Below are positions 7,433 to 64,000 of a stretch of DNA of 64,000 bases, piece after piece. Numbering within the stretch: position 1 is the stretch's first letter; each line of letters opens with the position of its first letter. Under the pieces are notes generated by a model. That model saw only the letters and a list, made by a program, of their open reading frames with translations. It was not told the DNA's origin and did no database searches. The translations under genes and the position numbers were made by a program. Source of the DNA: Macrostomum hystrix (taxonomy: Eukaryota > Animalia > Platyhelminthes); NCBI GenBank assembly GCA_950097015.1, contig CATNEN010000002.1, positions 2,542,001-2,606,000 of the forward strand. The letters are read 5' to 3'.

Positions 7433-8248
7433 CTAAATTCAGTTATCAAATTGTTGCTCAAACTTTTCTCATTGCTTGCCAAGAGCCAGCTAGTCTTTAA
7501 TCTATATAACTAAAGATGAAAACTATCTATATATATATATGTATGCGCGATCGATTTTCTCAAAAACGGCTTAACTGATTTTCACTATTTCTTCACCAAA
7601 AGATGCCAAATATGGGGACAATTATACACGTATTTTTATTAAGCTTAAATTTATTGCTAAAGGGATTAAATATTCGAAAAACTGTTTTAGATAGGATTTT
7701 TAATGCATTCAATCAGAGCCAGTTTTGTCAACGTGCACACCACTGCCAATTTTAATGATTGCATCAGGGCCAGTTTTGTTAAAAGTGAGTACACTGATAA
7801 GAATTTCACTGTGTCAACCCCACTGGCGAGACAGTCAGTGCGAATTTATTTATAAATAGATTGCATCACATCTTTTCACACCCATGTCAGAATTTCACTG
7901 ACTGCCGCTAAATTGGAATTGCATCGTCAACTTGCGCAACACTCCCTAGCTGACTGAGTTAGAAGCCTGCACGATCTGGACAGAACCTATAAGTGTACTC
8001 TATTTGTACAAAGCCAGAACTTTGAGAATTCATTTTATAAGGCTAATTTTTGCCTCCACAATCCAACAGTCGGAGTAGCCGATGTGTAGGCACTAGGAAT
8101 AGGTTAGGCTAGGCAAGGCGAAGTGTCCTTGGTTCGACTCTGCACTGCGTCAAATATTTGAAATAATTTTCAGTCAGTAGTGATGGATGCAAAGCAAATT
8201 TTTTAATTTTAATTTTGGAAATAAGTGGGAAATTTTTAATTCCCTTAT

Positions 8249-8905
8249 GCCAACCCAGAGTTTGAATCATGGCTAAACCCGAGTTTGAATCAAGGCTAAC
8301 CCAGAGTTTTAATCATGGCTAAACCAGAGTTTGAATCATGGCTAAACAAGCGTCTGAATCATGGCTAAACCAGAGACTAAATCATGGCTACACCAGGGTT
8401 TGAATCATGGCTAAACCAGAGACTAAATGATGGCTACACCAGAGTTTGAATCATGGCTAAACCAGAGACTAAATCATGGCTACACCAGGGTTTGAATCAT
8501 GGCTAAACCAGAGACTAAATGATGGCTACACCAGGGTTTGAATCATGGCTAAACCAGAGACTAAATGATGGCTACACCAGAGATTGAATCATAGCTAAAC
8601 AAGCGTCTGAATCATGGCTAAACCAGAGTTTGAATCATGGCTAAACCAGAGTTTGAATCATGGCTAAACAAGAGTTTGAACCATGGCTAAACCAGAGTTT
8701 GAACCATGGCTAAACCAGAGTTTGAATCATGGCTAAACCAGCGTTTGAATCATGGCTAAACCAGAGCTTGAATCATGGCAAAACCAGAGTTTGAATCATA
8801 GCCAACCAGAGTCTGAATCATGGCAAAACGAGAGTTTGAATCATAGCCCACCAGGGTTTAAAACATGGCGAAATCTGAGTTTGAATCTTGGCTTCCCCAG
8901 CGTTT
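8249..8905 (+). repeat. Minisatellite A, 23-bp unit GGCTAAACCAGAGTTTGAATCAT
   Basis: Direct inspection; about 28 copies. Confidence 0.95.
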
Positions 8906-8916
8906 GAAAAATCAAC

Positions 8917-10986
8917 GTCAACTGGGGAGTCATCATCAAATGGGGGATCATGGTGAACTTGGGGATCATTGTCAACTGGGTGATCATTATCAACTGGGGG
9001 ATCATCATCAACTGGGGGATCTTTGTCAACTGGGGGATCATTGTCAACTGTGGGATCATTGTCAACTGGGGGATCATTGTCAACTGGGGGATCATTGTCA
9101 ACTGGTGGATCGTTGTCAACTGGGGGTTCATTGTCAACTGGGTGATAATCATCAACTGGGGGATCATTGTCAACTGGGGGAACATTGTCAACTGGAGGAA
9201 CATTGTTAACTGGGGATCATCATCAATGGGGAGTCATCATCAACTGGGGGATCATTGTTAACTGGAGGATCTTTGTCAACTGGGGGATCATTGTCAACTG
9301 GGGGATTATTGTCAACTGGGGGATCATTGTCAACTGGGGGATCATTTTCAACTGGGTGATCATCATCAACTGGGGGATCATCATCAACTGGGGGATCATT
9401 GTCAACTGGGGGATCATTGTCAACTCGGGGATCATTGTCAACTGGGGGATCATTGTCAACTGGGGGATCATTGTCAACTGGGTAATCATCATCAACTGGC
9501 GGATCATTGTCAACTGGGGGTTCATTATCATCTGGGGGATCATTATGAACTGGGGGATCATTGTCAGCTGGGTGATCATTATCAAGTGGGGGATCATCAT
9601 CAACTGGGGGATCATTGTCAACTGGGGAATCATTGTCGACTGGGGAATCATTGTCAACTGGGGGGATCATTGTCAACTGGGGGATCATCATCAACTGGGG
9701 GATCATCATCAACTGGGGGATCATTGTCAACTGGGGGATCATTGTCAACTCGGGGATCATTGTCAACTGGGGGATCATTGTCAACTGGGGGATCATTGTC
9801 AACTGGTGGATCGTTGTCAACTGGGGGTTCATTGTCAACTGGGTGATAATCATCAACTGGGGGATCATTGTCAACTGGGGGAACATTGTCAACTGGAGGA
9901 ACATTGTTAACTGGGGATCATCATCAATGGGGAGTCATCATCAACTGGGGGATCATTGTTAACTGGAGGATCTTTGTCAACTGGGGGATCATTGTCAACT
10001 GGGGGATCATTGTCAACTGGGGGATCATTGTCAACTGGGGGATCATTGTCAACTGGGGGATCATTGTCAACTCGGGGATCATTGTCAACTGGGGGATCAT
10101 TGTCAACTGGGGGATCATTGTCAACTGGGTAATCATCATCAACTGGCGGATCATTGTCAACTGGGGGTTCATTATCATCTGGGGGATCATTATGAACTGG
10201 GGGATCATTGTCAGCTGGGTGATCATTATCAAGTGGGGGATCATCATCAACTGGGGGATCATTGTCAACTGGGGAATCATTGTCGACTGGGGAATCATTG
10301 TCAACTGGGGGGATCATTGTGAACTGGGGGATCATCATCAACTGGGGGATCATCATCAACTGGGGGATCATTGTCAACTGGGGGATCATTGTCAACTCGG
10401 GGATCATTGTCAACTGGGGGATCATTGTCAACTGGGGGATCATTGTCAACTGGGGGATCATTGTCAACTGGTGGATCGTTGTCAACTGAGGGTTCATTGT
10501 CAACTGGGTGATAATCATCAACTGGGGGATCATTGTCAACTGGGGGAACATTGTCAACTGGAGGAACATTGTTAACTGGGGATCATCATCAATGGGGAGT
10601 CATCATCAACTGGGGGATCATTGTCAACTGGGTAATCATCATCAACTGGCGGATCATTGTCAACTGGGGGTTCATTATCATCTGGGGGATCATTATGAAC
10701 TGGGGGATCATTGTAAGCTGGGTGATCATTATCAAGTGGGGGATCATCATCAACTGGGGGATCATTGTCAACTGGGGAATCATTGTCGACTGGGGAATCA
10801 TTGTCAACTGGGGGGATCATTGTCAACTGGGGGATCATTGTCAACTGGGGGATCATTGTCAACTGGGGGATCATTGACAACTGGGGGGATCATTGTCAAC
10901 TGGGGGATCATTGTCAACTGGGGAATCATTGTCAACTGGGGGATCATTGTCAACTGGGGGATCATTGTCAACTGGGTGATCATTGT
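8917..10986 (+). repeat. Minisatellite B, 18-bp unit GTCAACTGGGGGATCATT, with ~0.7-kb higher-order repeats
   Basis: Direct inspection. Identical marker blocks at 9167, 9868 and 10533 (spacing 701 and 665 bp). Confidence 0.95.
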
Positions 10987-11050
10987 AGCTTAAAAAAGCT
11001 GAAAATACAGCTGCTAAAAAGTATATACAAGATGAATTAAAAATATTTCT

Positions 11051-11079
11051 GCTCCCCGAAGGGGGGCAAAACTTGCTAG
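11051..11079 (+). other. Helitron 3' terminus type beta (hairpin + CTAG); also ends at 15348, 18337, 28919, 59747
   Basis: GCTCCCC-GAA-GGGGGGC, then 8 nt, then CTAG. Confidence 0.85.
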
Positions 11080-11753
11080 TCTAATATACTAAAAATGAAA
11101 ATCTTGCTTGCTTGCTTGTAATTGATTTTCTCCCGAACGGCTCAACCGATTTTCACAATTTCTTCACCAAAAGATGCCAAATATGGGGACACATATACAC
11201 GTATTTTTTTTAAGCTTAATTCCATTGCCAAGTGGATTAAATATTCGAAAAACAGTTTTAAATAGGCTTTTCTAATGCATTCTTCTTTTCAGCTTGTGCA
11301 CAGTGAGGCTCCAGTGCCAATTTTAATGATTGCATCAGAGCCAGTTTTGATAACGAACTGATAAGAACTCACAGGGAGGCTACCCAGAGGGTAGCGAAGG
11401 CAGCTAGTCTAATATACTAAAAATGAAAATCTTGCTTGCTTGCTTGCTTGTTTGCAATCGACTAGCTCCCGAACGGCTCAACCGATTTTCGCAATTCCTT
11501 CGCCAAAAGATCACAAATGGGCCGGAATCGGTACACGTATTTTTATTAAGCTTAATTTCATTGCCAAGGGGATTAAATATTCGAAAAACTGTTTTAAATA
11601 GGCTTTTCTAATGCATTCTTGTTTTCAGCTTGTGCACAGTGAGGCCTCCAGTGCCAAATTTAATGATTGCATCAGAGCCTGCAGTTTTGATAACGCACGC
11701 GTACTGATAAGAACTCACAGGGAGGCTACCCAGAGGGTAGCGAAGGCAGCTAG
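11080..11753 (+). mobile_element. Two short Helitron-like units (11080-11407, 11408-11753)
   Basis: TCTAATATACTAAAAATGAAAATCTTG(CTTG)n ... GCTACCCAGAGGGTAGCGAAGGCAGCTAG. Confidence 0.88.
11379..11407 (+). other. Helitron 3' terminus type alpha (hairpin + CTAG); ends all 18 short units
   Basis: Perfect 7-bp stem GCTACCC-AGA-GGGTAGC, then 8 nt, then CTAG. Confidence 0.88.
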
Positions 11754-12352
11754 TCCACTATACTAAAAATGAAATGGTTGCTTGGTTGCTTGCTTGGTTG
11801 CTTGTAATTGATTTTCTCCCGAACGGCTCAACCGATTTTGACCATTTCTTCACTAAAATATGCCAAATATGGGCAGAATTTTACACGTATTTTTATTAAG
11901 CTGAACTTTATTGCTAAGGGGATTAAATATTCGAAAAACATTATTTTGTCAAAGGTCAAACCATCTTGGCCTATTGAGAATTTTACTCACTGCCACTGAA
12001 TTAGAATTGCATCGTCAAATTGCGCAACAACCCCTAGCTGATTGAATTTGAAGCCTGCACTCTGGAGACAAATTGAAAATAAATGTACACAACCAACCGC
12101 GAGACTGAGTGTACTCTATTTTCTTACTTCATTGTACAAAGCCAGAACTTTGAGAATTCATTTTATAAGGCTGATTTTTGCGACCACTAACCAACAGTCG
12201 GAATAGCCGATGTGTGAGCACTAGGAATAGGTTAGGCTAGGCTAGGGTTCGATTCTGCACTGCGTCAAATCATTTAGACTAATTTTCAGCCAGTAGTGAT
12301 TGAAGATTATTTTAATTTATTTTTTTCATTTCGTAAATAAAATATCATAAAT

Positions 12353-13318
12353 CATAGCAAACCTGAGTTTGTCAAAGAAAACCTGAGTTTGAATCATGGC
12401 TAAACCATAGTCTGAATCATGGCTAAACCAGAGTTTGAATCATGGCTAAACCAGAGTTTGAATCATGGCTAAACCAGAGTCTGAATCATGGCTAAACCAG
12501 AGTCTGAATCATGGCAAAACTGGAGTCTGAATCATGGCTAAACCAGAGTTTGAATCATGCCTAAACCAGAGTCTGAATCATGGCTACACCAGAGTCTGAA
12601 TCATGGCTAAACCAGAGTTTGAATCATAGCTAAACCAGAGTCTGAATCATGGCTAAACCAGAGTCTGAATCATTGCTACACCAGAGTCTGAATCATGGCT
12701 CATAGCTAAACCAGAGTCTGAATCATGGCTAAACCAGAGTCTGAATCATGGCTAAACCAGAGTCTGAATCATGGCTACACCAGAGTCTGAATCATGGCTA
12801 AACTAGATTCTGAATCATGGCTAAACCAGAGTCTGAATCATGGCAAAACCAGAGTTTGAATCATGGCTAAACCAGAGTTTGAATCATGGCTAAACCAGCG
12901 TTTGAATCATGGCTTAACCAGAGTTTGAATCATGGCTAAACCAGAGTTTGAATCATGGCTAAACCATAGTCTGAATCATGGCTAACCCAGCATTTGAATC
13001 ATGGCTAAACCAGCGTTTGAATCATGGCTAAACCAGAGTTTGAATCATGGCTAAACCAGAGTTTGAATCATGGCCAAACCAGAGTTTGAATCATGGCTAA
13101 CCCAGCATTTGAATCATGGCTAAACCAGCGTTTGAATCATGGCTAAACCAGAGTTTGAATCATGGCTAAACCAGAGTTTGAATCATGGCTAAACCAGAGC
13201 TTGAATCATGGCTAAACCAGAGCTTGAATCATGGCTAAACCAGAGTTTGAATCATGGCTAAACCAGAGCTTGAATCATGGCTAAACCAGAGTTTGAATCA
13301 TGGCAAAACCAGCGTTTG
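12353..13318 (+). repeat. Minisatellite A (23 bp)
   Basis: Direct inspection. Confidence 0.95.
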
Positions 13319-13328
13319 AAAAATCAAC

Positions 13329-15256
13329 GTCAACTGTGGAGTCATCCTCAAAATGGGGATCAAGGTAAACTGGGGGATAATCATCAACTGGAGGATCTTG
13401 GTAAACTGGGGGGATAATTGTCAACTGGGGGATCATTGTCAACTGGGGGATCATTGTGAACTGAGGGATCATTGTCAACTAGGGGGTAATGGTCAACTGG
13501 GGGATAATTGTCAACTGGGGAATCATCATCAAATGGGGGATCATGGTCAACTTGGGGATCATTGTCAACTCGGTGATCATCATCAACTGGGGATCATCAT
13601 CAACTGGGGGATCATCATCAACTGGGGGATCATTGTGAACTGGGGGATCTTTGTCAACTGTGGGATCATTGTCAACTGGGGGATCATTGTCAACTGGGGG
13701 ATCGTTGTCAACTGGGGGTTCATCGTCAACTGGGGGATCATTGTCAACTGTGGGATCATTGTCAACTGGGGGATCATTGTCAACTGGGGGATCATTGTCA
13801 ACTGGGGGTTCATTGTGAACTGGGGGATCTTTGTCAACTGGGGGATCATTGTCAACTGTGGGATCATTGTCAACTGGGGGATCATTGTCAACTGGGGGAT
13901 CATTGTCAACTGGGGGTTCATTGTCAACTGGGGGTTCATTGTCAACTGGGGGATCATTGTCAACTGGGGGATAATTGTCAACTGGGGGATCATTGTCAAA
14001 TGGAGGATCATTGTCAACTGGGGGATAATTGTCAACTGGGGGATAATTGTCACGGGGAAACATCACCAAATGCGGGATCATAATCAACTGGGGGATCATT
14101 GTCAACTAGGGGATCATGTTCAACTGGGGGAACATTGTCAACTGGGATCACCATCAATGGGGGATCATAGTCAACTGAGAGATAATTGTCGACTGGGGGA
14201 TAATCGTCAACTGGGGGATCATGGTCAACTGGAGGATCATTGTCAACGGGGGGATAATTGTCAACTGGGGGATAATTGTCAACTGGGGAGTCATCATCAA
14301 ATGCGGGATCATGGTCAACTGGGGGATAATTGTCAATGTCAACTGGGGGATCATTGTCAACTGGGAGATCATTGTCAATGTCAACTGGGGGATCATTGTC
14401 AACTGGGGATCATTGTAAACTGGGGGATCATTGTCAACTGGGGGATCATTGTCAACTGGGGGTTTATCATCACCCGGAGGATCATTGTGAACTGGGGGGA
14501 TCATTGTCAACTTGTTGATCATCATCAACTGGGGGATCATTGTCAACTTGTTGATCATCATCAACTGGGGGATCATTGTCAACTTGTTGATCATCATCAA
14601 CTGGGGGATCATTGTCAACTTGTTGATCATCATCAACTGGGGGATCATTGTCAACTTGTTGATCATCATCAACTGGGGGATCATTGTCAACTGTGGGAAC
14701 ATTGTCAACTGGGGGAACGTTGTCAACTGGAGATTATCATCAATGGGGAGTCATCATTAACTGGGGGATCATTGTCAACTGCGTGATCATCATCAATTGA
14801 GGGATTATTGTCAACTCGGGGATCATTATCAACTGTGGGAACATTGTCAACTGGGGATCATCATCAATGGGGAGTCATCATTAACTGGGGGATCATTGTC
14901 AACTGCGTGATCATCATCAATTGAGGGATTATTGTCAACTGGGGGATCATAATCAACTGCGTGATCATCATCAATTGGGGGATTATTGTCAACGGGGGGA
15001 TCATAATCAACTGCGTGATCATCATCAATTGGGGGATTATTGTCAACGGGGGGATCATTGTCAACTGGGGGATCATTGTCAACTGGGGGATCATTGTTAA
15101 CTGGGGGATCTTTATCAACTGGGGGATCATTGTCAACTGGGGGATCATTGTCAACTGGGGGATCTTTATCAACTGGGGGATCATTGTCAACTGGGGGATC
15201 ATTGTCAACTGGGGGATCTTTATCAACTGGGGGATCATTGTCAACTGATCATTGTA
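13329..15256 (+). repeat. Minisatellite B (18 bp)
   Basis: Direct inspection. Confidence 0.95.
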
Positions 15257-15956
15257 GCGTAAAAAGGCTGAAAATGCAGCTGCTAAAAAGTGTATACTGG
15301 ACGAATTAAAAATATTTCTGCTCCCCGAAGGGGGGCAAAACTTGCTAGTCCACTATACTAAAAATGAAATGGTTGCTTGCTTGGTTGGTTGGTTGCTTGT
15401 AATTGATTTACTCCCGAATGGCTCAACCGATTTTCACCATTTCTTCACCAAAAGATGCCAAATATGGGGACAATTTTACACGTATTTTTATTAAGCTTAA
15501 CTTTATTGGCAAGGGGATTAAATATTCGAAAAACATGTTTTTTGACCATTTCAAAGGTCAAACTATCTTGGCCTATTGAGAATTTCATTCACTGACTGCC
15601 ACTGAATTAGAATTGCATCGTCAAATTGCGCAACAACCCCTAGCTGATTGAATTTGAAGCCTGCACTCTGGAGACAAATTTGAAATAAATGTACACAACC
15701 AACTGCGAGACTGAGTGTACTCTATTTTCTTACTTCATTGTACAAAGCCAGAACTTTGAAAATTCATTTTATAAGGCTGATTTTTCACCCACTAACCAAC
15801 AGTCGGAATAGCCGATGTGTAGGCACTGGGAATAAGTTAGGCTAGGCTAGGGTTCGATTCTGCACTGCGTCAAATCATTTAGACGAATTTTTAGCCAGTA
15901 GTGATTGAAGATTATTTTAGTTTATTTTTTTCATTTCGTAAATAAAATATCATAAA

Positions 15957-17187
15957 TCATAGCAAACCAGAGTTTGAATCAGTGCAACAATACAGTTTGA
16001 ATCATGGCTAAACCAGAGTCTGAATCATGGCTAAACCATAGTCTGAATCATGGCTAAACCAGAGTTTGAATCATGGCTAAACCAGAGTTTGAATCATGGC
16101 TAAACCAGAGTTTGAATCATGGCTAAACCATAGTCTGAATCATGGCTAAACCAGAGTTTGAATCATGGCTAAACCAGCGTCTGAATCATGGCTAAACCAG
16201 AGTCTGAATCATGGCTAAACCAACGTTTGAATCATGGCTAAACCAGAGTTTGAATCAGTGCAACAATACAGTTTGAATCATGGCTAAACCAGAGTCTGAA
16301 TCATGGCTAAACCATAGTCTGAATCATGGCTAAACCAGAGTTTGAATCATGGCTAAACCAGAGTTTGAATCATGGCTAAACCAGAGTTTGAATCATGGCT
16401 AAACCATAGTCTGAATCATGGCTAAACCAGAGTTTGAATCATGGCTAAACCAGCGTCTGAATCATGGCTAAACCAGAGTCTGAATCATGGCTAAACCAAC
16501 GTTTGAATCATGGCTAAACCAGAGTTTGAATCATGGCTAAACCAGCGTCTGAATCATGGCTAAACCAGAGTCTGAATCATGGCTAAACCAGAGTCTGAAT
16601 CATGGCTAAACCATAGTCTGAATCATGGCAAAATCAGAGTTTGAATCATGGCTAAACCAGAGTTTGAATCATGGCTAAACCAGAGTTTGAATCATGGCTA
16701 AACCAGAGTCTGAATCATGGCTTAACCAGAGTTTGAATCATGGCTAAACCAGCGTCTGAATCATGGCTAAACCAGAGTCTGAATCATGGCTAAACCAGAG
16801 TCTGAATCATGGCTAAACCATAGTCTGAATCATGGCTAAACCAGAGTCTGAATCATGGCTAAACCAGAGTCTGAATCATGGCTAAACCAGAGTCTGAATC
16901 ATGGCTAAACCATAGTCTGAATCATGGCTAAACCAGAGTTTGAATCATAGCCAACCAGAGTTTGAATCATAGCCAACCAGAGTTTGAATCATAGCCAACC
17001 AGAGTTTGAATCATGGCCAAAAACCAGAGTTTGAATCATAGCCAACCAGAGTTTGAATCATAGCCAACCAGAGTTTGAATCATAGTCAACCAGAGTCTGA
17101 ATCATGGCAAAACGAGAGTTTGAATCATAGCCCACCAGGGTTTAAAACGTGGCGAAATATGAGTTTGAATCTTGGCTTACCCAGCGT
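15957..17187 (+). repeat. Minisatellite A (23 bp) with a 276-bp (12-monomer) duplication
   Basis: Marker AGTGCAACAATACAG at 15981 and 16257. Confidence 0.93.
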
Positions 17188-17200
17188 TTGAAAAATCAAC

Positions 17201-18245
17201 GTCAACTGGGGAGTCATCATCAAAATGGGGATCATGGCAAACTGGGGGATAATCGTCAACTGGGGGATCATGGTAAACTGGGGGATAATTGTCAAGTGGG
17301 GAATCATCATCAAATGGGGGATCATGGTCAACTTGGGGATCATTGTCAACTGGGTGATCATCATCAACTGGGGATCATCATCAACTGGGGGATCATCATC
17401 AACTGGGGGTTCATTGTCAACTGTGGGATCATTGTCAACCGGCGGGATCATTGTCAACTGTGGGATCATTGTCAACTGGGGGATCATTGTCAACTGGGGG
17501 ACCATTGTCAACTGGGGGATCATTGTCAACTGGGGGGTAATGTTCAACTGGGGGATAATTGTCAACTGGGTAATCATCATCAAATGGGGGATCATGGTCA
17601 ACTTGGGGATCATTGTCAACTGGGTGATCATCATCAACTGGGGGATCATCATCAACTGGGGGATCGTTGTCAACTGGGGGTTCATTGTCAACTGTGGGAT
17701 CATTGTCAAGTGGGGGATCATTGTCAACTCGGGGATCATTGTCAACTGGGGGATCATTGTCAATTGGGGGAACATTGTCAACTGGAAGAACCTTGTTAAC
17801 TGGGGATCGTCATCAATGGGGAGTCATCATCAACTGGGGGATCATTGTGAACTGGAGTATCATTTTCAACTGGGGGATCATTGTCAACTCGGGGGATCAT
17901 TGTCAACTGGTGGATCGTTGTCAACTGGGGGATCGTTGTCAACTGGGGGTTCATTGTCAACTGGGGGATCATTGTCAACTGGGGGATCATTGTCAACTGG
18001 GGGATCGTTGTCAACTGGGGTTCATTGTCAACTGGGGGATCATTGTCAACTGTGCGATCATTTTCAACTGGGGGATAATTGTCAACTGGGGGATCATTGT
18101 CAACTGGGGGTTCATTGTCAACTGGGGGTTCATTGTCAACTGGGGGATCATTGTCAACTGGGGGATCATTGTCAACTGGGGGATCATCATCAACTAGGGG
18201 ATCATCATTAACTCGGGAATCATTGTCAACTGGGGGTTCATTGTA
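17201..18245 (+). repeat. Minisatellite B (18 bp)
   Basis: Direct inspection. Confidence 0.95.
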
Positions 18246-18337
18246 GCTTTAAAAAGCTGTAAATTCAGCTGCTAAAAAGTATATACTAGACGAATTAAAA
18301 GTATTTCTGCTCCCCGAAGAGGGGCAAAACTTGCTAG

Positions 18338-19858
18338 TCTTAATATACTAAAAATGAAAATCTTGCTTGCTTGCTTGCTTGCTTGTTTGCAATCGACTAG
18401 CTCCCGAACGGCTTAACCGATTTTCACAATTCCTTCGCCAAAAGATCACAAATGGGCCCGAATCGGTACACGTATTTTTATTAAGCTTAATTCCATTGCC
18501 AAGGGGATTAAATATTCGAAAAACTGTTTTAAATAGGCTTTTCTAATGCATTCTTGTTTTCAGCTTGTGCACAGTGAGGCTTCCAGTGCCAAATTTAATG
18601 ATTGCATCAGAGCCAGTTTTGATAACGCACGCGCGTACTGATAAGAACTCACAGGGAGGCTACCCAGAGGGTAGCGAAGGCAGCTAGTCTTTCTATTATA
18701 CTAAAAATGAAAATCTTGTATGTTTGCAATCGACTAGCTCCCGAACGGCTCAACCGATTTTCGCAATTCCTTCACCAAAAGATCACAAATAGGCCGGAAT
18801 CGGTACACGTATTTTTATTAAGCTTAATTCCATTGCCAAGGGGATTAAATATTCGAAAAACAGTTTTAAATAGGCTTTTCTAATGCATTCTTGTTTTCAG
18901 CTTGTGCACAGTGAGGCTCCAGTGCCAACTTTAATGATTGCATCAGAGCCAGTTTTGATAACGAACTGATAAGAACTCCAGTGAGGCTACCCAGAGGGTA
19001 GCGAAGGCAGCTAGTCTAATATACTAAAAATGAAAATCTTGCTTGTCTTCTATCTAATATACTAAAAATGAAAATCTTGCTTGCTTGCTTGCTTGTTTGC
19101 AATCGACTAGCTCCCGAACGGCTTAACCGATTTTCAAAATTCTTTCACTAAAAGATCGCAATCTATCTAATATACTAAAAATGAAAATCTTGTATGTTTG
19201 TATGTTTGTATGTTTGCAATCGACTAGCTCCCGAACGGCTCAACCGATTTTCGCAATTCCTTCGTTAAAAGATCACAAATGGGCCGGAATCGGTACACGT
19301 ATTTTTATTAAGCTTAATTTCATTGCCAAGGGGATTAAATATTCAAAAAACTGTTTTAAATAGGCTTTTCTAATGCATTCTTGTTTTCAGCTTGTGCACA
19401 GTGAGGCTCCAGTGCCAATTTTAATGATTGCATCAGAGCCAGTTTTGATAACGAACTGATAAGAACTCACAGGGAGGCTACCCAGAGGGTAGCGAAGGCA
19501 GCTAGTCTAATATACTAAAAATGAAAATCTTGCTTGCTTGCTTGCTTGCTTGTATGTTTGCAATCGACTAGCTCCCGAACGGCTCAACCGATTTTCAAAA
19601 TTCCTTCGCCAAAAGATCACAAATGGGCCGGAATCGGTACACGTAATTTTATTAAGCTTAATTCCATTGGCAAGGGGATTAAATATTCGAAAAACAGTTT
19701 TAAATAGGCTTTTCTAATGCATTCTTGTTTTCAGCTTGTGCACAGTGAGGCCTCCAGTGCCAATTTTAATGATTGCATCAGAGCCAGTTTTGATAACGCA
19801 CGCGCGTACTGATAAGAACTCACAGGGAGGCTACCCAGAGGGTAGCGAAGGCAGCTAG
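18338..19858 (+). mobile_element. Run of four short Helitron-like units plus two truncated 5' stubs (19015-19161)
   Basis: Units at 18338-18687, 18688-19014, 19162-19505 and 19506-19858. Stubs start at 19015 and ~19049. Confidence 0.85.
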
Positions 19859-20606
19859 TCTATATAACTAAAGATGAAAACTATCTATATATATATATGT
19901 ATGCGCGATCGATTTTCTCAAAAACGGCTTAACTGATTTTCACTATTTCTTCACCAAAAGATGCCAAATATGGGGACAATTATACACGTATTTTTATTAA
20001 GCTTAAATTTATTGCTAAAGGGATTTAATATTCGAAAAACTGTTTTAGATAGGATTTTTAATGCATTCAATCAGAGCCAGTTTTGTCAACGTGCACACCA
20101 CTGCCAATTTTAATGATTGCATCAGGGCCAGTTTTGTTAAAAGTGAGTACACTGATAAGAATTTCACTGTGTCAACCCCACTGGCGAGACAGTCAGTGCG
20201 AATTTATTTATAAATAGATTGCATCACATCTTTTCACACCCATGTCAGAATTTCACTGACTGCCGCTAAATTGGAATTGCATCGTCAACTTGCGCAACAC
20301 TCCCTAGCTGACTGAGTTAGAAGCCTGCACGATCTGGACAGAACCTATAAGTGTACTCTATTTGTACAAAGCCAGAACTTTGAGAATTCATTTTATAAGG
20401 CTAATTTTTGCCTCCACAATCCAACAGTCGGAGTAGCCGATGTGTAGGCACTAGGAATAGGTTAGGCTAGGCAAGGCGAAGTGTCCTTGGTTCGACTCTG
20501 CACTGCGTCAAATATTTGAAATAATTTTCAGTCAGTAGTGATGGATGCAAAGCAAATTTTTTAATTTTAATTTTGGAAATAAGTGGGAAATTTTTAATTC
20601 CCTTAT

Positions 20607-21263
20607 GCCAACCCAGAGTTTGAATCATGGCTAAACCCGAGTTTGAATCAAGGCTAACCCAGAGTTTTAATCATGGCTAAACCAGAGTTTGAATCATGGC
20701 TAAACAAGCGTCTGAATCATGGCTAAACCAGAGACTAAATCATGGCTACACCAGGGTTTGAATCATGGCTAAACCAGAGACTAAATGATGGCTACACCAG
20801 AGTTTGAATCATGGCTAAACCAGAGACTAAATCATGGCTACACCAGGGTTTGAATCATGGCTAAACCAGAGACTAAATGATGGCTACACCAGGGTTTGAA
20901 TCATGGCTAAACCAGAGACTAAATGATGGCTACACCAGAGATTGAATCATAGCTAAACAAGCGTCTGAATCATGGCTAAACCAGAGTTTGAATCATGGCT
21001 AAACCAGAGTTTGAATCATGGCTAAACAAGAGTTTGAACCATGGCTAAACCAGAGTTTGAACCATGGCTAAACCAGAGTTTGAATCATGGCTAAACCAGC
21101 GTTTGAATCATGGCTAAACCAGAGCTTGAATCATGGCAAAACCAGAGTTTGAATCATAGCCAACCAGAGTCTGAATCATGGCAAAACGAGAGTTTGAATC
21201 ATAGCCCACCAGGGTTTAAAACATGGCGAAATCTGAGTTTGAATCTTGGCTTCCCCAGCGTTT
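20607..21263 (+). repeat. Minisatellite A (23 bp), same variant order as 8249-8905
   Basis: Direct comparison. Confidence 0.93.
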
Positions 21264-21353
21264 GAAAAATCAACGTCAACTGGGGAGTCATCATCAAATG
21301 GGGGATCATGGTGAACTTGGGGATCATTGTCAACTGGGTGATCATTATCAACT

Positions 21354-23822: not shown

Positions 23823-23826
23823 TAGG

Positions 23827-24180: not shown

Positions 24181-24189
24181 GTTAATAAT

Positions 24190-28600: not shown

Positions 28601-28644
28601 TATTCACATGTACCTCAGTAGCATTAAGCTGAGTTGTATCAAAC

Positions 28645-28840: not shown

Positions 28841-28919
28841 GTGTGTTTTGTCCTTCTGCATTGCACAAGATTTTTTGTCTGACCAGTAGTGCTCCCCGAA
28901 GGGGGGCAAAACTTGCTAG

Positions 28920-53361: not shown

Positions 53362-53412
53362 TTTTGACTTACTAAATACTGTTTTATTATTGTAAAGTTG
53401 CCTTCAAGCTAA

Positions 53413-53441: not shown

Positions 53442-54800
53442 TCTTCTAATATACTAAAAATGAAAATCTTGCTTGCTTGCTTGTTTGCAATCGACTAGCT
53501 CCCGAACGGCTCAACCGATTTTCGCAATTCCTTCGCCAAAAGATCACAAATGGGCCGGAATCGGTACACGTATTTTTATTAAGCTTAATTTCATTGCCAA
53601 GGGGATTAAATATTCGAAAAACAGTTTTAAATAGGCTTTTCTAATGCATTCTTGTTTACAGCTTGTGCACAGTGAGGCCTCCAGTGCCAATTTTAATGAT
53701 TGCATCAGAGCCAGTTTTGATAACGAACTGATAAGAACTCCAGTGAGGCTACCCAGAGGGTAGCGAAGGCAGCTAGTCTAATATATCTAATATACTAAAA
53801 ATGAAAATCTTGCTTGTATGTTTGCAATCGACTAGCTCCCGAACGGCTCAACCGATTTTCGCAATTCCTTCGCCAAAAGATCACAAATGGGCCGGAATCG
53901 GTACACGTAATTTTATTAAGCTTAATTCCATTGGCAAGGGGATTAAATATTCGAAAAACAGTTTTAAATAGGCTTTTCTAATGCATTCTTGTTTTCAGCT
54001 TGTGCACAGTGAGGCCTCCAGTGCCAATTTTAATGATTGCATCAGAGCCAGTTTTGATAACGCACGCGCGTACTGATAAGAACTCACAGGGAGGCTACCC
54101 AGAGGGTAGCGAAGGCAGCTAGTCTAATATACTAAAAATGAAAATCTTGTTTGTATGTTTGTATGTTTGTATGTTTGCAATCGACTAGCTCCCGAACGGC
54201 TCAACCGATTTTCAAAATTCCTTCGCCAAAAGATCACAAATGGGCCGGAATCGGTACACGTAATTTTATTAAGCTTAATTCCATTGGCAAGGGGATTAAA
54301 TATTCGAAAAACAGTTTTAAATAGGCTTTTCTAATGCATTCTTGTTTTCAGCTTGTGCAGTGAGGCCTCCAGTGCCAAATTTAATGATTGCATCAGAGCC
54401 AGTTTTGATAACGAACTGATAAGAACTCACAGGGAGGCTACCCAGAGGGTAGCGAAGGCAGCTAGTCTAATATACTAAAAATGAAAATCTTGTTTGTATG
54501 TTTGTATGTTTGCAATCGACTAGCTCCCGAACGGCTCAACCGATTTTCGCAATTCCTTCGCTAAAAGATCACAATTGGTCCCGAATCGGTACACGTATTT
54601 TTATTAAGCTTAATTCCATTGCCAAGGGGATTAAATATTCGAAAAACAGTTTTAAATAGGCTTTTCTAATGCATTCTTGTTTTCAGCTTGTGCACAGTGA
54701 GGCTCCAGTGCCAATTTTTATGATTGCATCAGAGCCAGTTTTGATAACGAACTGATAAGAACTCCAGTGAGGCTACCCAGAGGGTAGCGAAGGCAGCTAG
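53442..54800 (+). mobile_element. Four short Helitron-like units (53442-53776, 53777-54122, 54123-54465, 54466-54800)
   Basis: TC start, alpha hairpin + CTAG end. Confidence 0.88.
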
Positions 54801-55403
54801 TCTTCCACTATACTAAAAATGAAATGGTTGGTTGGTTGGTTGGTTGGTTGGTTGGTTGTAATTGATTTTCTCCCGAACGGCTCAACCGATTTTCACCATT
54901 TCTTCACCAAAAGATGCTAAATATGGGGACAATTTTACACGTATTTTTATAAAGCTGAACTTCATTGCTAAGGGATTAAATATTCGAAAAACATGATTTT
55001 TTAAAGGTCAAACCATCTTGGCCTATTGAGAATTTCACTGACAGCCACTGAATTAGAATTGCATCGTCAAATTGCGCAACAACCCCTAGCTGATTGAATT
55101 TGAAGCCTGCACTCTGGAGACAAATTTGAAATAAATGTACACAACCAACCGCAAGACTGAGTGTACTCTATTTTCTTACTTCATTGTACAAAGCCAGAAC
55201 TTTGAGAATTCATTTTATAAGGCTGATTTTTGCACCCACTAACCAACAGTCGGAATAGCCGATGTGTAGGCACTAGGAATAGGTTAGGCTAGGCTAGGGT
55301 TCGATTCTGCACTGGGTCAAATCATTTAGACTAATTTTCAGCCAGTAGTGATTGAAGATTATTTTATATTATTTTTTATATTTCGTAAATAAAATATCAT
55401 AAA

Positions 55404-58029
55404 TCATAGCAAATCTGAGTTTGAATCATGGCTAAACCAGAGTTTGAATCATGGCTAAACCAGCGTCTGAATCATGGCTAAACCAGAGTTTGAATCATGG
55501 CTAAACCAGAGTCTGAATCATGGCTAAACCAGAGTTTAAATCATGGCTAAACCAGAGTCTGAATCATGGCTTAACCAGAGTTTGAATCATGGCTAAACCA
55601 GAGTCTGAATCATGGCTAAACCAGCGTCTGAATCATGGCTAAACCAGAGTTTGAACCATGGCTAAACCAGAGTCTGAATCATGGCTAAACCAGAGTTTAA
55701 ATCATGGCTAAACCAGAGTCTGAATCATGGCTAAACCAGAGTTTCAATCATGGCTAAACCAGCGTCTGAATCATGGCTAAACCAGCGTCTGAATCATGGC
55801 TAAACCAGCGTCTGAATCATGGCTAAACCAGAGTTTGAATCATGGCTAAACCAGAGTCTGAATCATGGCTAAACCAGCGTCTAAATCATGGCTAAACCAG
55901 AGTCTGAATCATGGCTAAACCAGAGTCTGAATCATGGCTAAACCAGAGTTTGAATCATGGCTAAACCAGAGTTTGAAACATGGCTAAACCAGAGCTTGAA
56001 TCATGGCAAAACCAGAGTCTGAATCATGGCTAAACCAGAGTCTGAATCATGGCAAAACGAGAGTTTGAATCATAGCCCACCAGGGTTTAAAACATGGCTA
56101 AACCAGAGTTTGAATCTTGGCTAAACCAGAGTTTGAATCATAGCCAACCAGAGTCTGAATCATGGCAAAACGAGAGTTTGAATCATAGCCCACCAGGGTT
56201 TAAAACATGGCTAAACCAGAGTTTGAATCTTGGCTAAACCAGAGTTTGAATCATAGCCAACCAGAGTCTGAATCATGGCAAAACGAGAGTTTGAATCATA
56301 GCCCACCAGGGTTTAAAACATGGCGAAACCTGAGTTTGAATCATGGCTAAACCAGAGTTTAAATCATGGCTAAACCAGAGTCTGAATCATGGCTTAACCA
56401 GAGTTTAAATCATGGCTAAACCAGAGTTTGAAACATGGCTAAACCAGAGCTTGAAACATGGCAAAACCAGAGTCTGAATCATGGCTAAACCAGAGTTTAA
56501 ATCATGGCTAAACCAGAGTTTGAATCATAGCCAACCAGAGTCTGAATCATGGCAAAACGAGAGTTTGAATCATAGCCCACCAGGGTTTTAAAACATGGCT
56601 AAACCAGAGTTTGAATCTTGGCTAAACCAGAGTTTGAATCATAGCCAACCAGAGTCTGAATCATGGCAAAACGAGAGTTTGAATCATAGCCCACCAGGGT
56701 TTAAAACATGGCGAAACCAGAGTCTGAATCATGGCTTAACCAGAGTTTGAATCATGGCTAAACCAGAGTCTGAATCATGGCTAAACCAGCGTCTGAATCA
56801 TGGCTAAACCAGAGTTTGAACCATGGCTAAACCAGAGTCTGAATCATGGCTAAACCAGAGTTTAAATCATGGCTAAACCAGAGTCTGAATCATGGCTAAA
56901 CCAGAGTTTCAATCATGGCTAAACCAGCGTCTGAATCATGGCTAAACCAGCGTCTGAATCATGGCTAAACCAGAGTTTGAATCATGGCTAAACCAGAGTC
57001 TGAATCATGGCTAAACCAGCGTCTGAATCATGGCTAAACCAGAGTCTGAATCATGGCTAAACCAGAGTCTGAATCATGGCTAAACCAGAGTTTGAATCAT
57101 GGCTAAACCAGAGTTTGAAACATGGCTAAACCAGAGCTTGAATCATGGCAAAACCAGAGTCTGAATCATGGCTAAACCAGAGTCTGAATCATGGCAAAAC
57201 GAGAGTTTGAATCATAGCCCACCAGGGTTTAAAACATGGCTAAACCAGAGTTTGAATCTTGGCTAAACCAGAGTTTGAATCATAGCCAACCAGAGTCTGA
57301 ATCATGGCAAAACGAGAGTTTGAATCATAGCCCACCAGGGTTTAAAACATGGCGAAACCAGAGTCTGAATCATGGCTTAACCAGAGTTTGAATCATGGCT
57401 AAACCAGAGTCTGAATCATGGCTAAACCAGCGTCTGAATCATGGCTAAACCAGAGTTTGAACCATGGCTAAACCAGAGTCTGAATCATGGCTAAACCAGA
57501 GTTTAAATCATGGCTAAACCAGAGTTTGAATCATGGCTAAACCAGAGTTTCAATCATGGCTAAACCAGCGTCTGAATCATGGCTAAACCAGCGTCTGAAT
57601 CATGGCTAAACCAGAGTTTGAATCATGGCTAAACCAGAGTCTGAATCATGGCTAAACCAGCGTCTGAATCATGGCTAAACCAGAGTCTGAATCATGGCTA
57701 AACCAGAGTCTGAATCATGGCTAAACCAGAGTTTGAATCATGGCTAAACCAGAGTTTGAAACATGGCTAAACCAGAGCTTGAATCATGGCAAAACCAGAG
57801 TCTGAATCATGGCTAAACCAGAGTCTGAATCATGGCAAAACGAGAGTTTGAATCATAGCCCACCAGGGTTTAAAACATGGCTAAACCAGAGTTTGAATCT
57901 TGGCTAAACCAGAGTTTGAATCATAGCCAACCAGAGTCTGAATCATGGCAAAACGAGAGTTTGAATCATAGCCCACCAGGGTTTAAAACATGGCGAAACC
58001 TGAGTTTGAATCTTGGCTAACCCAGTGTT
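55404..58029 (+). repeat. Minisatellite A (23 bp) with ~113-bp and 641-bp higher-order repeats
   Basis: Marker ACGAGAGTTTGAATCATAGCCCACCAGGG at 56057, 56170, 56671, 57312, 57953 and others. Confidence 0.95.
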
Positions 58030-58041
58030 TGAAAAATCAAC

Positions 58042-59653
58042 GTCAACTGGGGAGTCATCATCAAAATGGGGATCATGGTGAACTGGGGGATAATCGTCAA
58101 CTGGGGGATCATGGTAAACTGGGGGATAATTGTCAACTGGGGGATCATTGTCAACTGGGGGATCATTGTCAACTGGGGGATCATTGTCAACTGGGGGATC
58201 ATTGTCAACTGGGGTATCATTTTCAACTGGGGGATCATTGTCAACTAGGGGATCATTGTCCACTGGGGAATGATTGTCAACTGGGTAATCATGTCAACTG
58301 GGGGATCATTGTCAACTGGGGGATCATTGTCAAATGTAGGATCATTGTCAACTAGGGGATCATGGCCAACTGGGGATCATTGTGAACTTGGTGATCATTG
58401 TCAACTGGGGGATCATCTTCAACTGGGGGATCATTGTCAACTGGGAGATCATTGTAAACTGGGGGATCATCATCAACTGGGGGATCATTGTCAACTGGGG
58501 GATCATTGTCAACTGTAGGATCATTGTCAACTAGGGGATCATGGCCAACTGGGGAACATTGTGAACTGGGTGATCATTGTCAACTGGGGGATCATCTTCA
58601 ACTGGGGGATCATTGTCAACTGGGAGATCATTGTAAACTGGGGGATCATCATCAACTGGGGGATCATTGTCAACTGTGGGATCATTGTCAACTAGGGGAT
58701 CATGGCCAACTGGGGATCATTGTGAACTGGGTGATCATTGTCAACTGGGGGATCATCTTCAACTGGGTGATCATTGTCAACTGGGGTATCATTGTAAACT
58801 GGGGGATCATTGTCCACTGGGGAATGATTGTCAACTGGGTAATCATTGTCAACTGGGGGATCATTGTCAACTGGGGGATCATTGTCAACTGGGGGATCAT
58901 TGTCAACTGGGGGATCATTGTAAACTGGGGGATCATTTTCAACTGGGAGATCATTGTAAACTGGGGAATCATCATCAACTGGGGGATCATTGTAAACTGG
59001 GGGATCATTGTCAACTGTGGGATCATTGTCAACTAGGGGATCATGGCCAACTGGGGATCATTGTGAACTGGGGGATCATTGTCAACTGGGGGAACATTGT
59101 CAACTGGGGGATCATTGTCAACTGGGAGATAATTGTAAACTGGGGAATCATCATCAACTGGGGGATCATTGTAAACTGGGGGATCATTGTCAACTGTGGG
59201 ATCATTGTCAACTAGGGGATCATGGCCAACTGGGGATCATTGTGAACTGGGGGATCATTGTCAACTGGTGGATCATTGTCAACTGGGAGATCATTGTCAA
59301 CTGGGGGATCATTGTCAACTGGGGGATCATTGTCAACTGGAGGATCATTGTCAACTGGGTGATCATTATCAACTGGGGGATCATTGTCAACTGGGGGATC
59401 ATTGTCAACTGTGGGATCATTGTCAACTGGGGGATCATTGTCAACTGGTGGATCATTGTCAACTGGGAGATCATTGTCAACTGGGGGATCATTGTCAACT
59501 GGGGGATCATTGTCAACTGGGGGATCATTGTCAACTGGGGGATCATTGTCAACTGGGGGATCATTGTCAACTGGGGGATCATTATCAACTGGGGGATCAT
59601 TGTCAACTGGGGGATCATAATCAACTGGGGGATCATTGTCAACTGATCATTGT
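58042..59653 (+). repeat. Minisatellite B (18 bp)
   Basis: Direct inspection. Confidence 0.95.
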
Positions 59654-59747
59654 AGCGCAAAAAAGGCTGACAATACAGCTGCTAAAAAGTATATACTGGA
59701 CGAGTTAAAAATATTTCTGCTCCCCGAAGGGGGGCAAAACTTGCTAG

Positions 59748-61462
59748 TCTAATATACTAAAAATGAAAATCTTGCTTGTATGTTTGTTTGCAATCGACTA
59801 GCTCCCGAACGGCTCAACCGATTTTCAAATTTGTGAGCCAAAAGATCACAAATGGGCCGGAATCGGTACACGTAATTTTATTAAGCTTAATTCCATTGGC
59901 AAGGGGATTAAATATTCGAAAAACTGTTTTAAATAGGCTTTTCTAATGCATTCTTGTTTTCAGCTTGTGCGCAGTGAGGCTCCAGTGCCAATTTTAATGA
60001 TGCATCAGAGCCAGTTTTGATAACGAACTGATAAGAACTCACAGGGAGGCTACCCAGAGGGTAGCGAAGGCAGCTAGTCTAATATACTAAAAATGAAAAT
60101 CTTGTATGTTTGTATGTTTGCAATCGACTAGCTCCCGAACGGCTCAACCGATTTTCGCAATTCCTTCGCCAAAAGATCACAAATGGGCCGGAATCGGTAC
60201 ACGTATTTTTATTAAGCTTAATTTCATTGCCAAGGGGATTAAATATTCGAAAAACTGTTTTAAATAGGCTTTTCTAATGCATTCTTGTTTTCAGCTTGTG
60301 CACAGCTTCAGCTTGCTCCAGTGCCAAATTTAATGATTGCATCAGAGCCTGCAGTTTTGATAACGCACGCGTACTGATAAGAACTCACAGGGAGGCTACC
60401 CAGAGGGTAGCGAAGGCAGCTAGTCTAATATACTAAAAATGAAAATCTTGTTTGTATGTTTGTATGTTTGTATGTTTGCAATCGACTAGCTCCCGAACGG
60501 CTCAACCGATTTTCGCAATTCCTTCGCCAAAAGATCACAAATGGGCCGGAATCGGTACACGTATTTTTATTAAGCTTAATTCCATTGCCAAGGGGATTAA
60601 ATATTCGAAAAACAGTTTTAAATAGGCTTTTCTAATGCATTCTTGTTTTCAGCTTGTGCACAGTGAGGCTCCAGTGCCAATTTTTATGATTGCATCAGAG
60701 CCAGTTTTGATAACGAACTGATAAGAACTCCAGTGAGGCTACCCAGAGGGTAGCGAAGGCAGCTAGTCTAATATACTAAAAATGAAAATCTTGTTTGTAT
60801 GTTTGTATGTTTGTATGTTTGCAATCGACTAGCTCCCGAACGGCTCAACCGATTTTCGCAATTCCTTCGCCAAAAGATCACAAATGGGCCGGAATCGGTA
60901 CACGTATTTTTATTAAGCTTAATTCCATTGCCAAGGGGATTAAATATTCGAAAAACAGTTTTAAATAGGCTTTTCTAATGCATTCTTGTTTTCAGCTTGT
61001 GCACAGTGAGGCTCCAGTGCCAATTTTTATGATTGCATCAGAGCCAGTTTTGATAACGAACTGATAAGAACTCCAGTGAGGCTACCCAGAGGGTAGCGAA
61101 GGCAGCTAGTCTAATATACTAAAAATGAAAATCTTGCTTGCTTGCTTGCTTGCTTGTATGTTTGCAATCGACTAGCTCCCGAACGGCTCAACCGATTTTC
61201 GCAATTCCTTCGCTAAAAGATCACAATTGGTCCCGAATCGGTACACGTATTTTTATTAAGCTTAATTCCATTGCCAAGGGGATTAAATATTCGAAAAACT
61301 GTTTTAAATAGGCTTTTCTAATGCATTCTTGTTTTCAGCTTGTGCACAGTGAGGCCTCCAGTGCCAAATTTAATGATTGCATCAGAGCCAGTTTTGATAA
61401 CGCACGCGCGTACTGATAAGAACTCACAGGGAGGCTACCCAGAGGGTAGCGAAGGCAGCTAG
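59748..61462 (+). mobile_element. Five short Helitron-like units (59748-60077, 60078-60423, 60424-60766, 60767-61109, 61110-61462)
   Basis: TC start, alpha hairpin + CTAG end. Confidence 0.88.
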
Positions 61463-64000
61463 TCTAATATACTAAAAATGAAAATCTTGCTTGCTTGCTT
61501 GTATGTTTGCAATCGACTAGCTCCCGAACGGCTCAACCGATTTTCAAAATTCTTTCACTAAAAGATCGCAAATGGGCCGGAATCGGTACACGTATTTTTA
61601 TTAAGCTTAATTCCATTGGCAAGGGGATTAAATATTCGAAAAACAGTTTTAAATAGGCTTTTCTAATGCATTCTTGTTTTCAGCTTGTGCACAGTGAGGC
61701 TCCAGTGCCAATTTTTATGATTGCATCAAAGCCAGTTTTGTTAGGCGAGCGTACTGATAAGGAATTTCTCACCCAAATGTGCATAGCTGTGTCAACCCCA
61801 CTGGCGAGATAATTACTGTCCAATGTGCACAGGCTGAGCTGGCTTCTGTTATCTGTTCGGCACTGAGATATTTTTTTATTTTTATTTATTGAGTTTTATT
61901 CAAACTCATTTAGCAGATATAGCAGATTTCAATTATAGCAGATTCATTCACATCACAGCATACTCCAAAGGCAACAGCTGAGAACTGAATTGATTCAAGT
62001 GATCGGCCTTTCTTGGCAGCAAGTAGCATTTCTTGATTATACTTGCTTACTTACTTGCTTACTTGCTTACTTACTTGCAAAAGCATTGATAGATATCTAG
62101 GCTCAACATTCTTATAGATTTCTAGGCTCAACATTTTTATAGAGATCTAGGCACAGCATTGATAGTTATCTATGCTCAACATTTTTATAGATATCTAGGC
62201 TCAGCATTGATAGTTTTCTAGGCTCAACATTCTTATAGATTTCTAGGCTCAACATTGATAGATATCTAGGCACAGCATCGATAGATATCCAAGCTCAGAA
62301 TTTATATTTATCTAGGCTCAGCATTGATAGTTACCTAGGCTCAGCATTGATAGTTATCTAGGCTTAGCATTGATAGTTACCTAGGCTTAGCATTGATAGT
62401 TATCTAGGCTTAGGATTGATAGTTATCTAGGCTCAACATTTTTATAGATAACTAGGCTCAGCATTGATAGTTATCTAGGCTCAGCATTGATAGTTATCTA
62501 GGCTCAACATTGATAGATATCTAGGCTCAGCATTGATAGATATCCAAACTCAGAATTGATAGGTTCCAAGGGTCAGAATCGATAAAAAACTAGGCTCAGC
62601 ATTGATAGTTATCTAGGCTCAACATTTTTATAGATAACTAGGCTCAGCATTGATAGTATCTAGGCTCAACATTTTTATAGATAACTAGGCACAGCATTGA
62701 TAGTTATCTAGGCACAGCATTGATAGTTATCTAGGCTCAGCATTGATAGTTACCTAGGCTCAGCATTGATAGTTACCTAGGCTTAGCATTGATAGTTACC
62801 TAGGCTCAGCATTGATAGTTACCTAGGCTCAGCATTGATAGTTACCTAGGCTTAGCATTGATAGTTACCTAGGCTCAACATTGATAGATATCTAGGCTCA
62901 GCATTGATAGATATCTAGGCTCAGCATTGATAGTTATCTAGGCTCAACATTGATAGATATCTAGGCTCAGCATTGATAGATATCCAAGCTCAGAATTGAT
63001 AGGTTCCAAGGGTCAGAATCGATAGAAAACTAGGCTCAGCATTGATAGTTATCTAGGCTCAACATTTTTATAGATAACTAGGCTCAGCATTGATAGTATC
63101 TAGGCTCAACATTTTTATAGATAACTAGGCACAGCATTGATAGTTATCTAGGCACAGCATTGATAGTTATCTAGGCTCAGCATTGATAGTTACCTAGGCT
63201 CAGCATTGATAGTTACCTAGGCTTAGCATTGATAGTTACCTAGGCTCAGCATTGATAGTTACCTAGGCTCAGCATTGATAGTTACCTAGGCTTAGCATTG
63301 ATAGTTACCTAGGCTCAACATTGATAGATATCTAGGCTCAGCATTGATACATATCTAGGCTCAGCATTGATAGTTATCTAGGCTCAACATTGATAGATAT
63401 CTAGGCTCAGCATTGATAGATATCCAAGCTCAGAATTGATAGGTTCCAAGGGTCAGAATCGATAGAAAACTAGGCTCAGCATTGATAGTTATCTAGGCTC
63501 AACATTTTTATAGATAACTAGGCTCAGCATTGATAGTATCTAGGCTCAACATTTTTATAGATAACTAGGCACAGCATTGATAGTTATCTAGGCACAGCAT
63601 TGATAGTTATCTAGGCTCAGCATTGATAGTTACCTAGGCTCAGCATTGATAGTTACCTAGGCTTAGCATTGATAGTTATCTAGGCTCAGCATTGATAGTT
63701 ACCTAGGCTCAGCATTGATAGTTACCTAGGCTTAGCATTGATAGTTACCTAGGCTCAGCATTGATAGTTACCTAGGCTCAGCATTGATAGTTATCTAGGC
63801 TCAACATTTTTATAGATAACTAGGCTCAGCATTGATAGTATCTAGGCTCAACATTTTTATAGATAACTAGGCACAGCATTGATAGTTATCTAGGCACAGC
63901 ATTGATAGTTACCTAGGCTCAGCATTGATAGTTACCTAGGCTCAGCATTGATAGTTAACTAGGCTCAGCATTGATTGTTATCTAGGCTCAACATTTTTAT
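61463..64000 (+). mobile_element. Long Helitron-like unit of the same subfamily as 29926-53441; truncated by the window edge
   Basis: Shares the unique segment TTAGGCGAGCGTACTGATAAGGAATTTC...(TACTTGCT)n and then enters satellite C. Confidence 0.82.
62082..64000 (+). repeat. Minisatellite C (23 bp) with a 440-bp higher-order repeat
   Basis: Marker at 62548, 62988 and 63428. Confidence 0.95.

Follow-up and report, generated by a model that had tools for sequence, protein, structure and literature searches.

In a stretch of 64,000 nucleotides (nt) from the flatworm Macrostomum hystrix (GenBank assembly GCA_950097015.1, contig CATNEN010000002.1, positions 2,542,001 to 2,606,000 of the forward strand; hereafter the window), we identified 25 Helitron units arranged head-to-tail on the same strand. 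They run from position 7501 to beyond the window end and span 56.5 kilobases (kb) within it. We put at roughly 50% the probability that this train was built by serial additions, made by a transposase at the 5' TC starts of units already resident, together with recombination. Four features of the sequence suggest such a history: the linkage of unit heads to their terminators, seven joins between non-cognate ends, junctions that are all distinct, and the breakpoints of short 5' stubs. One assembled window of 64,000 nt is the evidence base for all results.

A one-strand train of Helitron units

Scanning both strands for CTAG/T (the slash marks the joint), unit heads and terminators, we located 24 exact junctions at which a hairpin and GCTAG run directly into the TC of the next unit, with no host DNA at any of them. 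All lie on the + strand, and the - strand of the window contained neither unit heads nor terminators. The word GCTAGTC occurs 46 times, against 8.9 ± 2.9 in shuffled sequences; the 26 copies on the + strand are the 24 junctions, the left edge and one host site, and the 20 on the - strand stem from an inverted copy within the short-unit head. Neighbours belong to different families in 10 of the 24 adjacent pairs.

These counts agree with the initial annotation of this DNA, which had described 24 precise one-strand junctions, no host DNA and neighbours of mixed subfamilies, and they refine it in three respects. Hairpin and CTAG/TC are present at all 24 junctions, but at six of these 1-151 nt are added, most of which duplicate the 5' start of a unit. 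Polarity is uniform for whole units, but 184 base pairs (bp) of satellite inside the tenth unit are inverted (21357-21540). The left edge, placed at 7501, reads cagCTAG/TCTTTAA/TC, hence a start at either 7494 or 7501. The right end of the train lies beyond the window, and the last unit is incomplete at 64000. The units (U01 to U25) and their junctions are as follows.

Next-unit starts at junctions 1 to 12, + strand: 11080, 11408, 11754, 15349, 18338, 18688, 19015, 19506, 19859, 28920, 29251, 29585
Next-unit starts at junctions 13 to 24, + strand: 29926, 53442, 53777, 54123, 54466, 54801, 59748, 60078, 60424, 60767, 61110, 61463
7489 to 7500, +: left edge, GCTAG/TCTTTAA ahead of U01; a host A/T site at 7500/7501, or a hairpin-less CTAG plus a 7-nt stub
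7501 to 11079, +: U01, long; a-type head, 23-mer and 18-mer minisatellites, L-type terminator
11080 to 11753, +: U02 (short; its head includes an a/b-like tract) and U03 (short, S)
11754 to 18337, +: U04 and U05, long; b-type head, 23-mer and 18-mer satellites, L terminator
18338 to 19858, +: U06 to U09, short S units
19859 to 28919, +: U10, a chimeric long unit
28920 to 29925, +: U11 to U13, short S units
29926 to 53441, +: U14, 23.5 kb in all; S-type head, 22.5-kb 23-mer minisatellite, K-type terminator
53442 to 54800, +: U15 to U18, short S units
54801 to 59747, +: U19, a long b-type unit with L terminator and a TCT stub
59748 to 61462, +: U20 to U24, short S units; U22 and U23 are the same in sequence
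61463 to 64000, +, continuing past the window: U25, of the family of U14 (96% over about 665 nt)

Eighteen units are minis of about 330-350 bp (S units). The other seven are long and owe their length to minisatellite (23-, 18-, 21- and 24-mers), which makes up 44.6 of the 56.5 kb (79%).

By their termini the units are non-autonomous Helitron1 elements, which gives a class to the Helitron-type ends reported in the initial annotation. A 5' TC is present in 25 of 25 units and a 3' GCTAG (CTRR) at 24 of 24 visible ends. Three sequence families of terminator (S, L and K) occur, each with a GC-rich stem of 7-8 bp that ends 7-8 nt before CTAG; hairpin z scores are -2.8 for S, -1.6 to -1.9 for L and K, and -0.4 for U05, whose hairpin is weakened by one substitution. 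The three head types (s, a and b) are about 84-88% identical over their first 200-300 nt. Assignment to Helitron2/Helentron (DINE-1/HINE) was rejected, as the ends are TC and CTAG and not T-run termini with a TT target. No open reading frame (ORF) for a RepHel transposase was found in the array, where the longest ORF, at 477 amino acids, is far below RepHel size (array ORFs were assessed without a profile search). Of 32 array ORFs of at least 100 amino acids, 31 lie on minisatellite and one (107 amino acids) in a unit head. The units contain no tRNA or Rfam RNA, and DNA-pattern scans of metagenome and viral contigs for the elements gave no matches. At 8060-8150, and in the same segment of b-type units, A-box- and B-box-like words (GGTTCGA) surround short AGGCT repeats, without a tRNA or Rfam match.

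In the S family alone, the 3' end can pair with the head through two blocks of 8 and 7 bp; a and b heads have none, and the subterminal inverted repeats of Helentrons measure 11-15 bp. The blocks, GACTAGCT (at about +55) and CCTTCGC (at about +100), pair with the S tail at 60062-60185 and at every S/s junction. For the last 16 nt of the S end plus TC against the s-type head, the pairing energy is -13.7 kcal/mol, compared with -5.3 ± 1.6 for shuffled sequences, none of 300 being as good. This pairing, noticed post hoc, may be a functional pairing of ends or a quasi-palindrome template-switch scar. The non-autonomous insect Helitrons Hel-2/Lep1 (PMC4344730) and the Helentrons DINE-1/HINE (PMC4067079, PMC7492417) are non-coding, with a microsatellite just inside the 5' end, a 3' stem-loop and subterminal inverted repeats, and some DINE-1/HINE carry internal tandem repeats (PMC4067079, PMC7492417). 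Their likeness to the present units is one of structure, compared by description and not by sequence kinship; DINE-1/HINE have T-run ends and TT targets, whereas the units here run from TC to CTAG like Hel-2.

Order and kinship of the units

The kinship of the units led us to reject a single-donor rolling-circle concatemer as the origin of the whole array. Adjacent S units show a mean of 10.8 differences, equal to the 10.8 over all pairs (p = 0.53), and S units within one block are no closer to each other than S units from separate blocks. U22 and U23 are the sole identical adjacent pair. Compared over the head core, five of the 25 units have a neighbour as nearest relative, partly via ties. 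That roll-out from one donor is insufficient had been argued in the initial annotation, which proposed this comparison of neighbours as a check; the absence of closer kinship between neighbours, the lone identical pair and the seven non-cognate joins described below all uphold the argument.

The annotation had also named a few large segmental duplications of one block as an outcome that would speak against it, and these were not seen. A higher-order satellite or segmental duplication was rejected: no multi-unit block is repeated in the array, no two of the 24 junctions agree over ±60 nt (over ±30 nt there are 13 types), and exact repeats that span a junction reach at most 402 nt (U22/U23). An integron-like cassette array was rejected as well, since the window holds no recombinase ORF, the train has no age gradient (rho 0.00), and the order of long and short units is random by a runs test.

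Head and terminator types are fully linked within units (5/5 versus 0/19, p = 2e-5) and unlinked across junctions (p = 1). Seven exact joins are non-cognate (L/s four times, S/b twice and S/a once), where random ordering gives 8.0. A single circle cannot have produced them. Neither can homologous exchange, because the families share only GCTAG/TC at the junction and because chimeras with an a or b tip on an S body, or an s tip on an L body, are absent among the units. At least seven junction classes (about 12 with stubs) therefore point to separate precise end-joining events, which would most simply be the work of a transposase. U01 and U10 are 99.9% identical over about 1.48 kb, and this identity starts precisely at TC, a boundary that suggests transposed copies.

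Separate joining could also have taken place off the chromosome, where rolling-circle multimers or circle-circle joins, formed by terminator read-through or strand exchange, would give blocks that insert en bloc at ordinary A/T sites. Circles with exact junctions replicate and act as donors (PMC5876387), cases of end bypass and of composite transposition have been described, such a route has been invoked for tandem arrays in plants and Drosophila, and U22 and U23 form an exact tandem pair. However, units are identical at only one of 13 S/S junctions, nearest relatives adjoin for just the few units noted above, and no one donor could yield the seven non-cognate joins; we regard this origin as unlikely. 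An end-bypass origin of the long units, which would have left a decayed S-type terminator inside them, was rejected (p = 0.36 and 0.85).

Recombination contributed to the train as well, for the short units are recombinant mosaics. In a set of 17 S units, the four-gamete test finds 82 of 136 informative site pairs incompatible. Private changes are absent in most of these units, variants recur at intermediate frequency, and linkage decays with distance, reaching background by about 60 nt (Mantel p = 0.007). Since linkage has dropped to background beyond 60 nt even inside units, linkage across S/S junctions carries no signal. U02 carries an a/b-like tract, and the head core of U14 equals that of the S units U03, U15 and U21, from which its sister U25 differs. 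The exchanges may have taken place within this train, within others or on circles, and short-read polishing may conceivably mimic them.

Such mosaicism with almost no private changes, the tract in U02 and the head core of U14, and exact duplications of up to 2.2 kb inside the satellites would all fit a small seed cluster, formed by a few insertions that happened to be adjacent and later expanded by unequal crossing-over and gene conversion, like a complex satellite. Yet homologous exchange cannot create new junction classes, and about 12 exist (7 ignoring stubs). Moreover, no block of several units recurs, and the heads of U04, U05 and U19 are 4-5% apart (95% identity between U04 and U05). Expansion from a seed cluster is, in our judgement, decidedly improbable.

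The minisatellites of two long units deserve a closer look. U10 opens with 1.49 kb that are 99.9% identical to U01, runs on through satellites, inverted and direct, of 23-mers, 21-mers and 24-mers and through a unique stretch of 290 bp, and ends in about the final 30 nt of an L terminator. At 21353-21560 its 18-mer satellite switches at a short microhomology into the 184 bp of inverted 23-mer, which folds back on the direct 23-mer array at 21540/21541; the inversion looks like a template-switch scar. The 23-mer tract of U14 (30591-53100, 22.5 kb) has exact internal repeats of up to 2243 nt and shares an exact match of 439 nt with the tract of U25, and its assembled length may be uncertain.

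A tract of this size, with exact repeats of 2.2 kb, may exceed read length, and if the sequence belongs to the published M. hystrix assembly (42 contigs; Canu, Arrow, Pilon), short-read polishing could have mixed copies. Unit order or length could then be an artefact of assembly or polishing. We consider this highly improbable: every junction context is unique within 120 nt, the blocks of short units are under 2 kb, and variants recur across units at intermediate frequency rather than being collapsed to one consensus.

Stubs, the left edge and a possible mechanism of growth

At six junctions (ahead of U06, U07, U08, U15, U16 and U19), extra letters precede a complete unit.

Ahead of U15 and of U19: TCT
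Ahead of U07: TCTT
Ahead of U06: one extra T
Ahead of U16: TCTAATATA
19015 to 19165, +, ahead of U08: a stack of 31 nt, TCT, TCTA, 109 nt and TCTA

Most of these stubs are prefixes of a unit start, and most are 3-9 nt long. The TCT ahead of U19 mismatches that unit's own TCC start, the 109-nt stub resembles the head of U25, and the last letters of the 31-nt stub are CTTG. Nine of 11 stub breakpoints fall within the first 10 nt of a unit of about 340 nt, a post hoc count of breakpoints that are not all independent. None of the 24 junctions is followed by a 5'-truncated unit, and stubs are not enriched at non-cognate junctions (p = 1). Under either origin of the stubs considered below, resident 5' starts look like hot spots. 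The stubs suggest that the resident 5' start, over the 3' end, is the recognised site, though recognition of either would cut the same bond at internal junctions.

The initial annotation had offered a model centred on the 3' end: a resident CTAG/T would be recognised, nicked and joined to an incoming 5' TC, with the train growing at its 3' ends. The left edge is ambiguous in this regard. An A precedes 7501, in keeping with the A/TC rule at 7500/7501, yet a CTAG/TC sits 7 nt upstream. This sequence, CAGCTAG/TCT, resembles an S-type junction, although no hairpin stands before it (z = +1.0), and would fit a founding insertion at a host CTAG/T; by chance, GCTAGTCT would be met within 20 positions with a probability of about 3e-4. 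Helraiser cleaves its right terminal sequence (RTS) precisely in vitro, and CTTG, with which the 31-nt stub ends, is an alternative Helraiser end (both PMC4778049). Against growth at 3' ends, the stubs copy 5' starts and not 3' ends, the left edge satisfies the canonical A/TC equally well, and a G before TC needs no special target (PMC2267711), so that we give this model little credence. The annotation had further taken the G in place of A to exclude canonical insertion. This does not hold, as insertion between a host A and a resident T gives CTAG/TC exactly (PMC2267711); because A/T and G/T insertion both yield CTAG/TC, the junction sequence cannot decide between these models.

In the addition at resident 5' starts that we favour, a RepHel transposase encoded elsewhere would nick the + strand just 5' of a resident TC, as has been shown for Helraiser. 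The free 3'-OH (on the host A at the left edge, or on the G of CTAG internally) would accept the transposase-bound 5' TC of an incoming unit, whose CTAG would then be sealed to the resident's TC. Each addition would create one new exact CTAG/TC and keep the polarity. A stub would remain if the 3'-OH were first extended by a few bases, or if an earlier self-insertion moved as a composite; after extension at a nicked resident TC, the downstream unit would still be whole. Homologous exchange or gene conversion would scramble the short units into the mosaics observed, sometimes duplicating one, and expansion of the internal minisatellites would give the 79% of length that they occupy. Such targeting of junctions is chemically plausible because Helraiser cleaves plus-strand junctions of RTS and left terminal sequence precisely and reversibly, with leading-strand synthesis starting at the nick (PMC5876387).

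Several points weigh against this history. The 13 S/S junctions are also explicable by rolling-circle multimers or unequal crossing-over, and the short units are so heavily recombinant that any neighbour signal left by a concatemer would be erased. The neighbour test is weakened for these 13 junctions because recombination scrambles the short units, and some of them may be concatemer or unequal-crossover products. The prediction that a stub copies the start of the next unit holds weakly for U19 and fails for the 109-nt stub. Finally, Helraiser shows no local hopping in cells, and about 97% of its targets are A/T (PMC4778049).

The idea of junction targeting is itself not new, as Du et al. (2008) proposed both host-A/resident-T and G/T insertion for a pair of maize Helitrons (PMC2267711). 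A bolder version, in which a Macrostomum Helitron transposase strongly prefers the CTAG/TC junction (or any resident TC start) across families, would make such trains self-renewing landing pads, possibly helped by pairing of joined ends with the S head. We hold this bolder version to be possible but doubtful, and the landing pad put forward in the initial annotation to be a reasonable hypothesis.

The host locus and related Helitron arrays

The train lies beside a gene copy with immunoglobulin (Ig) and EGF domains.

2591 to 7433, -: exons of the Ig/EGF gene copy, homologous to Macrostomum lignano Mlig028090

It starts about 60 nt upstream of an EGF exon (7433-7353, - strand), where M. lignano has an intron of about 1 kb at the matching position. 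The copy is without some 277 residues (about 82-358, part of the laminin EGF/laminin B region), has an in-frame TGA stop at 6994-6992, and is probably a pseudogene of a local gene family; because of these two defects, selection at the site of the train is probably relaxed. No host function is indicated for the train, whose locus adjoins this probably dead copy. Host exons were searched singly. The only protein match of an upstream exon was an M. lignano Ig/EGF/laminin-B protein (69%), and at the DNA level the exons share 69-91% identity with five M. lignano loci, a likeness that is confined to exons. Element queries against M. lignano gave one weak match of 45 nt (E = 0.006). Neither a same-species locus nor an empty site was found in these searches, the protein searches returning only M. 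lignano. Elsewhere in the host DNA, a degenerate pol fragment of a long terminal repeat retrotransposon occupies 400-2130 (+), with an RNase H-like domain (Pfam RT_RNaseH_2, E = 2.6e-19). At 2925-3070, tRNA-like A-box and B-box words were seen by eye and ARAGORN found no tRNA; this segment is possibly an insert in the host gene that resembles a short interspersed nuclear element.

At maize r1, adjacent heterologous Helitrons meet at an exact CTAG/TC (G/T) junction, for which consecutive insertion was concluded (Du et al. 2008, PMC2267711). Both cases thus have exact CTAG/TC between unrelated Helitrons; maize has two elements, whereas the train here has at least 25 units of four families, with seven non-cognate joins and stubs. 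Tandem same-strand arrays are reported from Myotis bats, plant centromeres and the Drosophila pseudoobscura Y (PMC5876387, PMC5148889, bioRxiv 2021.06.02.446622). As cited or described there, they share the head-to-tail same-strand junctions, but each is of one family and is ascribed to rolling-circle concatemers, in contrast to the mixed families in random order here. Fusarium FoHeli elements have multiple 5' termini with duplicated segments of 31-85 nt, explained by self-insertion and composite transposition (PMC5148889). Short duplicated 5' ends are common to both systems; FoHeli, however, is of Helitron2 type and does not form long trains, and the stubs here are mostly 3-9 nt. A literature search of incomplete coverage turned up no paper on long mixed-family Helitron trains or on Helitron trains in Macrostomum. 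As shorter Helitron chains, the maize heterologous pair and multiple 5' termini in Fusarium are already known, the long mixed-family train with non-cognate joins is a variant on these.

Whether head-to-tail Helitrons arise as concatemers or by consecutive insertion has been debated since 2007-2008, on pairs and homogeneous arrays (PMC2267711). A mixed train of 25 units with non-cognate joins and a spectrum of 5' stubs offers better material. It allows counts of junction classes, stub lengths and allelic differences, and reconstituted Helraiser could test the resident start or junction as a preferred target. If there is no such preference, the train would plainly exemplify an already known class of array. 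If there is, it would show that a eukaryotic HUH transposase selects its targets, account for one way in which a transposon can turn into complex satellite, and point to a means of directing Helitron vectors.

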